From the NCBI GenBank assembly GCA_001642005.1, contig LWCA01000058.1, positions 1-64,000 of the forward strand: a DNA stretch of 64,000 bases, given 5' to 3'. The DNA is from Intoshia linei. Lineage: Eukaryota; Animalia; Orthonectida. This document shows, piece after piece, positions 647-1,844 of the stretch (the first letter of the stretch is position 1; every line of letters begins with the position of its first letter). A model generated the notes under the pieces. It saw only the letters and a list, made by a program, of their open reading frames with translations. It had not been told where the DNA came from and searched no databases. A program made the position numbers and the translations under genes.

Positions 647-1844
647 TTACCGTCTATTGAAACTGCTATCACGGGATGGTGATCTTGATGGTGTATATCT
701 CCTGCGATATCTACGACTTTCACTTCGCGAATCTCTGCGTTTGTGTCTACATTAACAATTTAAATAAAACACATCAAAACTACATACCTACGATGACTTC
801 TGGAACGACTTCTAGAATAACTCCTAGAGTTACTATCCCTTGAATGGTGATGTCTGGAAGACCTTGAACTAAAAAAATAAAAATCAACTAAACGAAATTA
901 CTCTCCACTCCGATTTTTCATTTCTCTGGGAGCTAGAAAGAAAATTAAAACATGATACAATAAAATTACTTTTTCTATCACTTCTAGCAAAATCAATCTC
1001 CAATTCGTTACCAAAAAGTCGATAATTGTTCATTTCATGTCTCGCATCTTTAGCATCTCTACGGTCGTCAAACGTGGTTAATTAAGGAAAAAATGTTTTA
1101 ACAATAATAATGTAAAATAATATATATAAAGGATATTGTTTAATCTTTAATCTTTTAAAAAAAATCTTTAAAAAATCTTTTAGATTCAAATATCTTTATA
1201 GAATCTTTTAGAAAAAATCTCTATAAAATCTTTTATATTCAATAATCTTTCAGAAAGAATCTTTATAAAATCTTTTCGATTCATACATCTTTAAGATGAA
1301 ATCATTTATGAATGTAAGGATATTGGACGTAGGCAAAACCACGTGGAACTTTGGTAAAATAATCGGTCGGAACATATACCTAAAATGATAATACTTAATT
1401 TGTAAATTTACGTTTGGTTACATCTGATATTTTTCCAAATTTTCTAAATAATTCTCGTAGATCATCAGATCTAAAAATTTAATAAAAAATTGCGCCAAAA
1501 CATACAAATCATATTGAATAAATGAAGTTTGTGTGCATGAAAATACATAAAACAATGAAAATGTTTATGGAACACAGAATAATTAACTAGTATGCAAAAC
1601 AAAAGATTAAATGTTAAAAATTAACATAAAGACAAAAATTCTGGCTAGTCGTTCACTGTTTAATTGATAATTTCACTCTTTGTTGAAAAAATATTGAAAA
1701 ATGCAAAATATAAATGAAAAATGAAACTTGATTAAACTCATAATTTGGGGGAAATTACAATTGATAATAAAATTACACGCATTCATTAGGTATATTTTTG
1801 ATATAAAGTGAAGAACAAGATCTTGGACCAGATCTGTACGGCAT
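647..1844 (-). CDS. SRSF10: SR splicing factor, SRSF10/SRSF12-like (RRM + RS domain), about 162 aa, 7 exons
   Basis: Exons (-): 1844-1777, 1470-1422, 1379-1324, 1073-970, 932-902, 868-788, 746-647 give 489 nt. Translation: [98 protein letters not shown], then an RS-rich tail. It resembles SRSF10 motifs [23 protein letters not shown] and GDRKTP. The final CGG|TAA could alternatively be a donor to a further exon. Confidence 0.9.
1074..1323 (-). other. U12-type (minor spliceosome) AT-AC intron, 250 nt
   Basis: 5' splice site ATATCCTTAC at 1323, branch site TTCCTTAAT at 1089-1081, 3' end TAACCAC at 1074. Removing it joins CA|G and restores RNP1 GFAYVQF in frame. Confidence 0.93.
1139..1295 (-). 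repeat. Array of 11 AAAGAT motifs (ATCTTT on + strand) inside the U12 intron
   Basis: Eleven exact ATCTTT plus variants (ATCTCT, ATCATT), all in one orientation. The array is bounded by a 10-bp direct repeat AAGGATATTG at 1129-1138 and 1316-1325, which are the two U12 donors. Confidence 0.85.

Follow-up and report, generated by a model that had tools for sequence, protein, structure and literature searches.

We have found that the minor-spliceosome (U12-type) intron in the SRSF10 orthologue of Intoshia linei holds, within 250 nt, a one-stranded array of AAAGAU motifs enclosed by two U12 donors that share a single branch site and acceptor. On balance, we think it probable that this intron is a miniaturised form of the old SRSF10 negative-feedback cassette known from mammals. 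So understood, the I. linei cassette is an extremely compact version of a known circuit, and the recurrence of its parts across phyla is the more interesting result. All coordinates below are positions in the window, i.e. the whole 64-kb stretch of I. linei DNA that was analysed; the gene lies on its minus strand.

The host gene is A3Q56_00866 (minus strand, 651-1844), a short gene whose product has an RRM at the N-terminus and an RS-rich tail. The query of the protein database search was the single exon 4 and then the protein that it matched. The translation of exon 4 (971-1072, minus strand), searched alone, matched at 100% identity P0001, a protein of 190 aa with the record title 'hypothetical protein A3Q56_00866, partial [Intoshia linei]'. 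The best relatives of P0001 are SRSF10/SRSF12-like proteins of molluscs, echinoderms, cnidarians, arthropods and vertebrates (45-58% identity over the RRM), as expected from the identification of the gene as SRSF10 in an earlier note on this DNA; no orthonectid relatives were found in the search with P0001, the next best matches being those at 45-58% identity. The exon structure was read from the contigs of three public runs of one study, with NMD unblocked; these are contigs rather than raw reads, and they are taken to represent RNA because they are spliced. The features of the gene and of its U12 intron are as follows.

1844-1777 (ATG at 1844), 1470-1422, 1379-1324 and 1073-970, minus strand: SRSF10 exons (RNA contigs)
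932-902, 868-788, 746-651 and one more below 400, minus strand: SRSF10 exons, continued (RNA contigs)
1324..1379, minus strand: coding exon 3, which encodes RNP-1 of the RRM (RNA contigs, translation, match to P0001)
970..1073, minus strand: exon 4, 34 residues (RNA contigs, match to P0001)
1074..1323, minus strand: U12-type AT-AC intron of 250 nt, removed in the productive mRNA (RNA contigs)
1314..1323, minus strand: U12 donor 1, used, ATATCCTTAC (sequence and RNA contigs)
1081..1089, minus strand: U12 branch-site box TTCCTTAAT, about 9-10 nt before the AC acceptor (sequence)

Exon 3 is 56 nt long. Five introns of the gene have GT..AG ends, lengths of 33-42 nt or 306 nt and acceptors that are all TAG; the cut of intron 2 is ambiguous by 3 in the contigs, and the GT..AG ends settle its position.

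Each of the three RNA runs has one contig with the junction 1324^1073, at a depth of 379-534; in the productive mRNA donor 1 (1323) is used and all 250 nt are removed. The intron has an RTATCCTT donor and a TCCTTAAY branch box, the shared acceptor reads CCAC/G at 1074/1073 (minus strand), and the only occurrence of TTCCTTAAY in the 64-kb window is at 1089..1081 of the minus strand. The genome contains minor snRNAs: U11 (80.5 bits) and U6atac (37.6 bits) score above their Rfam cut-offs, and a U12 snRNA candidate (G000:C1433:1399-1529, L012), though below its cut-off (35.8 bits versus 53), carries the branch-site-pairing box TAAGGAAAA. The minor snRNAs of this fast-evolving lineage look strongly diverged. 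Since the junction is seen in RNA and the minor snRNAs are found in the genome, we conclude that the minor spliceosome is present and that 1323..1074 is a working U12 intron.

Candidate AT-AC introns elsewhere in the I. linei genome are ∼68-108 nt long. The one in C2162 (68 nt) is convincing and the one in C2345 (about 105 nt) is perhaps real; a candidate in C405 was rejected as not looking coding. A strict genome-wide U12 pattern yielded 10 matches versus 16 for the control and is therefore unusable as a census of U12 introns. Introns of this species have a median length of 57 bp (PMC6543705). By these measures the inner intron that would run from the second donor to the shared acceptor (1136..1074, 63 nt) is of normal size, so that the excess of 187 nt in the full intron is exactly the cassette, retained while nearly all else in this genome was reduced. 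The features of the cassette are the following.

1143..1292, minus strand: array of 11 AAAGAT (AAAGAU in RNA), candidate SRSF10-binding enhancer (motif scan)
1127..1136, minus strand: U12 donor 2, candidate, ATATCCTTTA (sequence)
1302..1304, minus strand: in-frame TGA, 8 codons past exon 3 if donor 1 is unused (translation)
1289..1290, minus strand: AG of an AAG acceptor, candidate (sequence)
1281..1286, minus strand: GTATGA, candidate start of a nested U2 intron (sequence, putative)
1221..1228, minus strand: TTTTATAG, acceptor-like site within the array (sequence, putative)

All 11 copies of AAAGAT at 1292..1143 are on the sense strand, with none on the antisense strand. Shuffles of the intron give an expectation of 0.2, and the density in the window (89 per 128,000 strand-bases) corresponds to about 0.1 per 150 nt. 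So many copies go far beyond chance, but TRF shows a tandem repeat here, its higher-order units of 42/53 nt being 76-87% identical. When two of the 42-nt units were compared by eye, 1 of 18 core positions and 7 of 24 spacer positions differed, which is a weak contrast.

The second donor is a less striking feature when taken alone. Minus-strand copies of ATATCCTT are at 1323..1316 and 1136..1129, and both U12 donors lie within a 10-base direct repeat, CAATATCCTT (minus strand), whose copies are spaced by 187 nt. In the AT-rich 64-kb window ATATCCTT was observed 7 times with 4.5 expected; the probability of a second copy within one given 240-nt stretch is about 1%, and an unrelated 10-mer is also repeated within the same 341 nt, which is why donor 2 by itself is merely moderately beyond chance. 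The last AAAGAT precedes donor 2 (1136) by 7 nt, and from this donor to the shared acceptor is a distance of 63 nt; with U at +9, donor 2 has one more predicted pair than donor 1 with the 5′ end (AAAAGGG) of the U11 candidate.

Every isoform that retains sequence beyond donor 1 contains a stop codon. Reading through donor 1 gives VQYPYIHK followed by the stop at 1304..1302, and the segment 1288..1137, in the phase set by exon 2, gives MYESKRFYKDSF and a stop after 12 codons. The architecture described in the earlier note thus holds in its main parts: a genuine AT-AC U12 intron, two perfect U12 donors with one branch site and one acceptor, 11 same-strand AAAGAU motifs between the donors, and a downstream donor whose use would leave a 63-nt intron, extend exon 3 by 187 nt and bring in an immediate stop, with an in-frame stop in the 1288-1137 segment as well.

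A further proposal of that note, that the AAG acceptor at 1289 defines an exon mutually exclusive with exon 3, did not fare so well. No contig supports it, the dinucleotide GT is absent from 1322..1289 (donor 1 to the AAG acceptor), and all U2 acceptors of the gene are TAG. The mutually exclusive-exon version is the least likely one because it relies on an AAG acceptor lacking an upstream intronic GT, unlike the TAG acceptors of this gene. Near the 5′ end of the intron just one GT looks like a U2 donor, that of GTATGA at 1281..1286, which resembles the GTATGT donor of the intron at 787; in turn, TTTTATAG at 1221..1228 resembles the true TTTTAG acceptors of I. linei SRSF10.

We looked in the same RNA contigs for the unproductive forms. 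Donor 1136, acceptor 1289 and the GT at 1286 are used by no contig in the three runs. The joints 1137^1073 and 1422^1288 are likewise missing among these contigs, which drop rare variants, and contig depth is zero over 1156-1317 in three runs of one study made without NMD block, where contigs cannot show absence. An intron-1 segment at 6-18% of exon depth did assemble in the runs that show zero depth over 1156-1317. In run X1 a small depth in the bin 1102-1155 was traced to a chimeric-looking contig (21- and 30-nt pieces with a non-canonical joint 1117/1921) and was set aside as noise. Of the junctions proposed for RNA mapping, therefore, only the productive one has been found in the contigs.

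The 10-bp direct repeat around the donors raises the question of a mobile element. In this explanation a transposon or retroposon of 177 nt inserted itself where exon meets intron, and the donor was copied as part of the 10-bp target-site duplication: the direct repeat is perfect, it flanks 177 nt, and subtraction of one repeat copy together with these 177 nt (187 nt in all) leaves the normal 63-nt intron. Still, when the 179-nt insert was searched by BLAST in all 41.6 Mb of the genome, it matched only itself, and no terminal inverted repeats were found between the copies of the 10-bp direct repeat. A genome-wide pattern of three closely spaced AAAGAT gave 10 matches, 6 of which are the SRSF10 array itself, versus 15 for the reversed control, i.e. 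the matches elsewhere are at control level. Moreover, 150 of the 177 nt are the array, and related arrays occur in the same intron of other phyla. An insertion of this kind is thus highly improbable. The possibility that the array is a multicopy MITE or satellite, listed in the earlier note as a potential refutation, fails since the array is single-copy, has no terminal inverted repeats and is the sole such cluster in the 64-kb window (both strands scanned for AAAGAY/CAAG clusters).

The orthologous intron was compared at eight loci: sea urchin (L015), oyster (L016), Lingula (L017), Exaiptasia (L018), Priapulus (L019), the fish Betta (L020), Trichinella (L024) and Haliotis (L025). At all eight an AT-AC intron is present at the same codon, CA/ATATCCTT after GFAY(V/I)(Q/E). 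We counted as a cluster any group of at least five AAAGAY or CAAG motifs in which no gap exceeds 40 nt. Such clusters are present in seven of the eight species (14 in total), all on the sense strand and within the U12 intron, which makes up 16-39% of each locus; the number of clusters outside the intron is zero, as is the number of antisense ones. The loci of Trichinella and Haliotis were examined only after the prediction of intron-confined clusters had been stated. The sequence RTATCC is found within 150 nt after the last cluster in four of the seven species (fish at +10, Lingula at +27, oyster at +88 and Haliotis at +115), the probability of four or more by chance being about 7e-4; in sea urchin it is located about 150 nt after the cluster, just beyond this limit, and in fish the site, 10 nt after the cluster, is GTATCCTAAG. 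The CAAG motif and the 150-nt limit were chosen after viewing the data, and the statistics of clusters and donors are accordingly suggestive rather than formal.

The motif AAAGA[CT], in turn, was an a-priori one. Counted alone at six loci, it occurs on the sense strand 27 times inside the U12 intron versus 34 times outside, the intron having a 24% share of the length (p=4e-4), and the ratio of sense to antisense occurrences inside the intron is 27:13. AAAGAT is among only seven hexamers found ≥2 times in each of five orthologous introns, where it occurs 19 times in sense and 6 times in antisense orientation with 7.2 expected. Exaiptasia, the species with no dense cluster, nevertheless has AAAGAY motifs with a 9:1 sense bias. 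YAAAGAY comes immediately after a strong U2 acceptor in fish, Priapulus and Lingula, and the 11-mer TTAAAGATGTA opens both the Priapulus and the I. linei arrays. The I. linei array consists of AAAGAT without any CAAG, the dominant motif in other phyla, and may have been re-invented in this lineage instead of being inherited directly. Taken together, the comparison is suggestive of an architecture conserved across phyla, with motif clusters, often followed by a donor-like site, in the U12 intron.

Two more observations were made at these loci. The sea urchin U12 intron (L015, 3887-3960) contains a near-perfect (TTCAAG)n array after a strong U2 acceptor and then a GT donor, so that in another phylum, too, the candidate enhancer is a short-unit tandem repeat. 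In Lingula (L017, 1682-1700) and Priapulus (L019, 3589-3615) there are U2-type donors, CAG/GTAAAA and AGT/GTAAAT respectively, 13-20 nt downstream of the U12 donor, similar to the competing major site of mammalian exon 2; the corresponding 35 nt in I. linei contain no GT. Among the annotated mollusc and sponge isoforms that were read, no truncated isoforms hinting at exon-3 inclusion were found. A literature search found no earlier description of the SRSF10 cassette in invertebrates, which is no proof of absence.

These data bear on the explanation that the array is a neutral intronic minisatellite, a short A/T-rich unit expanded by slippage, with a second ATATCCTT that came from local duplication or from chance and that the spliceosome passes over, and with a likeness to the SRSF10 motif that is coincidental in an AT-rich genome. 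Tandem repeats can expand neutrally, and the higher-order units detected by TRF fit such a history; ATATCCTT is common in the window, another 10-mer is repeated nearby by chance, the productive junction alone is seen in the RNA contigs, and the fold of the intron RNA is no better than that of shuffles (z -0.72). However, tandem arrays are rare here (two with scores ≥80 in 64 kb), and this one is in the very intron where seven of eight other animals have sense clusters of related motifs, confined to that intron within their loci. Its motifs are all on one strand, and it ends 7 nt from a perfect donor (10 nt in fish), and a useless insert of 187 nt with a strong competing donor would be costly in a genome with so short a median intron. 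We therefore consider neutral expansion unlikely, albeit an explanation to be taken seriously.

In the mammalian Srsf10 gene, use of the upstream minor 5′ splice site of exon 2 leads to exon 4 and the coding mRNA, whereas use of a downstream major site leads to exon 3, which contains a stop and a poly(A) site; through a GA-rich enhancer in exon 3 SRSF10 promotes the unproductive choice, and at the end of exon 3 there is a minor 5′ splice site that sees little use (PMC7244321, PMC8329584). Motifs reported for SRSF10 are AAAGACAAA and AGAGAV (PMC8522700). AAAGAU has the AAAGA core in common with AAAGACAAA, and binding of SRSF10 to the array is predicted from this likeness. The parallels with mammalian Srsf10 (Meinke et al. 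2020, eLife, PMC7244321) include an AT-AC U12 intron after GFAYVQ, a sense-strand purine-rich element with SRSF10-type motifs inside this intron, a second minor 5′ splice site that closes the element, one U12 acceptor common to both donors and a premature stop once donor 1 is bypassed. The loop had been described in the earlier note as a differently built one; since a layout of two U12 donors around an SRSF10 enhancer with a shared acceptor is already published for mammals (PMC7244321, PMC8329584), this description does not hold.

The differences are nonetheless considerable. The I. linei intron has 250 nt versus kilobases in mammalian Srsf10, and where mammals have a mixed GA-rich enhancer its element repeats one hexamer in tandem. 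No U2 donor separates the U12 donor from the element, the nearest GT being the one at 1286 in the array; as donor 1 and the array have no GT between them, nothing in I. linei clearly corresponds to the downstream U2 donor of mammals, nor is a strong U2 acceptor or a poly(A) site evident. Donor 2, unlike its mammalian counterpart, is perfect as an AT-type site and has the acceptor just 63 nt away, which makes a direct competition between two U12 donors possible. Finally, an unproductive isoform is known for mammalian Srsf10 and none is seen in the I. linei RNA contigs.

Two other systems are of use for comparison. The USSE of SNRNP48 and RNPC3 is described as providing feedback via an unproductive isoform (Verbeeren et al. 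2010, as reviewed in PMC8329584). The USSE, like the I. linei cassette, has U12 5′ splice-site sequences in a non-coding position which could recruit U11 and possibly help to define the upstream segment; its sites are, however, an adjacent tandem pair, never spliced and at a fixed distance from a U2 acceptor, and the host genes encode U11/U12 proteins rather than an SR protein. The analogy with tandem U11 sites drawn previously for I. linei does not carry over, as the two I. linei donors are 187 nt apart and the first of them is the productive donor. In the Drosophila prospero twintron a U2 intron is nested in an AT-AC U12 intron under the control of a purine-rich element (PMC8329584). There, as proposed for I. 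linei, a purine-rich element in a U12 AT-AC intron decides between pairs of splice sites; prospero, though, yields two coding isoforms and its element is bound by Hrp36/38, while the I. linei alternative would be non-coding and its nested U2 intron is conjectural.

The mechanism we propose is the following. The array would correspond to the GA-rich enhancer of the mammalian 'exon 3' and, together with the second U12 donor, would act upstream of the single branch site and acceptor. Abundant SRSF10 would bind the array, and the array-bearing segment would then be kept. This could come about directly, by a shift of U11/U12 to the proximal donor 1136 and removal of the 63-nt intron, or by an alternative route with a small nested U2 intron, from the GT at 1286 to an AG of the array such as that at 1221, followed by the use of donor 1136. 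The stop-containing transcript would be non-productive or degraded, and negative feedback would result, which would depend on how active the minor spliceosome is too. By default donor 1 wins, which exon definition across the 56-nt exon 3 may explain. Diversion of splicing by an SRSF10-bound array is the best-supported reading because the same intron in other animals carries sense clusters, often followed by a U12-like donor; of the feedback loop suggested in the earlier note this part gains support, and its unproductive junctions are so far unseen in the RNA contigs.

A functional array need not be a poison switch. It might be an intronic or exonic enhancer, bound by SRSF10 or by another purine-binding protein (Tra2-like or hnRNP A1-like), whose effect is to favour productive U12 splicing from donor 1 or to repress donor 2. 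Only productive splicing is observed, despite donor 2 being nearer to the branch site and matching U11 better, so something must favour donor 1, and the purine-rich element of the prospero twintron (PMC8329584) is a precedent. On the other hand, the homologous mammalian element promotes the unproductive isoform (PMC7244321), and an enhancer of this kind would leave the stop codons and the second donor without a role. We judge this alternative improbable and keep the feedback cassette as the preferred reading.

Whether the cassette is an ancient module is a more tentative matter. It is conceivable, although we find it rather doubtful, that it is an ancient bilaterian, possibly metazoan, module which survives extreme genome reduction in an orthonectid, stripped to a minimum, i.e. 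to two U12 donors competing directly for one acceptor, with the outcome set by the SR protein bound between them. If true, this would be alternative splicing carried out wholly by the minor spliceosome and sensing both the level of SRSF10 and the availability of U11/U12. To our knowledge, SRSF10 is the sole SR protein gene with a minor intron, and its mammalian cassette links SR-protein levels to minor-spliceosome activity. If the parts are indeed shared by a brachiopod, molluscs, a priapulid, a nematode, a sea urchin, a fish and an orthonectid, the circuit would be hundreds of millions of years old, and a circuit so old could help to explain the retention of the U12 intron and of the minor spliceosome in streamlined genomes. 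The I. linei genome is one of the smallest animal genomes, and in it the cassette is kept in 250 nt. As exon 3 to exon 4 amounts to about 310 nt, the whole cassette fits one minigene and would make a minimal system for the choice of an SR protein between two U12 donors.

Some additional features of the transcript were noted outside the U12 intron. Intron 1 of SRSF10 (1471-1776, 306 nt) is represented by separate contigs at 6-18% of exon depth in the three runs, the low-abundance assembled segment in this region being 1441-1786 or 1441-1806. In run X1 one of the intron-1 contigs has a joint 1786^1941 whose ends read GT..AG on the plus strand, and an eIF3a-like gene starts at 2022 (plus strand, 2022-2111), divergent from SRSF10 with its ATG at 1844 on the minus strand. 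What looks like a retained intron 1 may thus belong to eIF3a, as an alternative 5′ exon upstream of it and antisense to SRSF10; this would account for the length of the intron. In the 5′ leader of SRSF10, a T/A homopolymer at 1857 is one base shorter in all RNA contigs than in the genome, which is either an assembly error or a polymorphism.

At the other end of the gene, P0001, marked as partial, ends at the SRSF10 donor at 650/651. The RNA contigs run past the donor at 650 into sequence absent from 400-650. Run X2 has two different continuations past this donor (agreement 0.6), which suggests alternative 3′ exons of SRSF10; vertebrate SRSF10 also has alternative 3′ exons.
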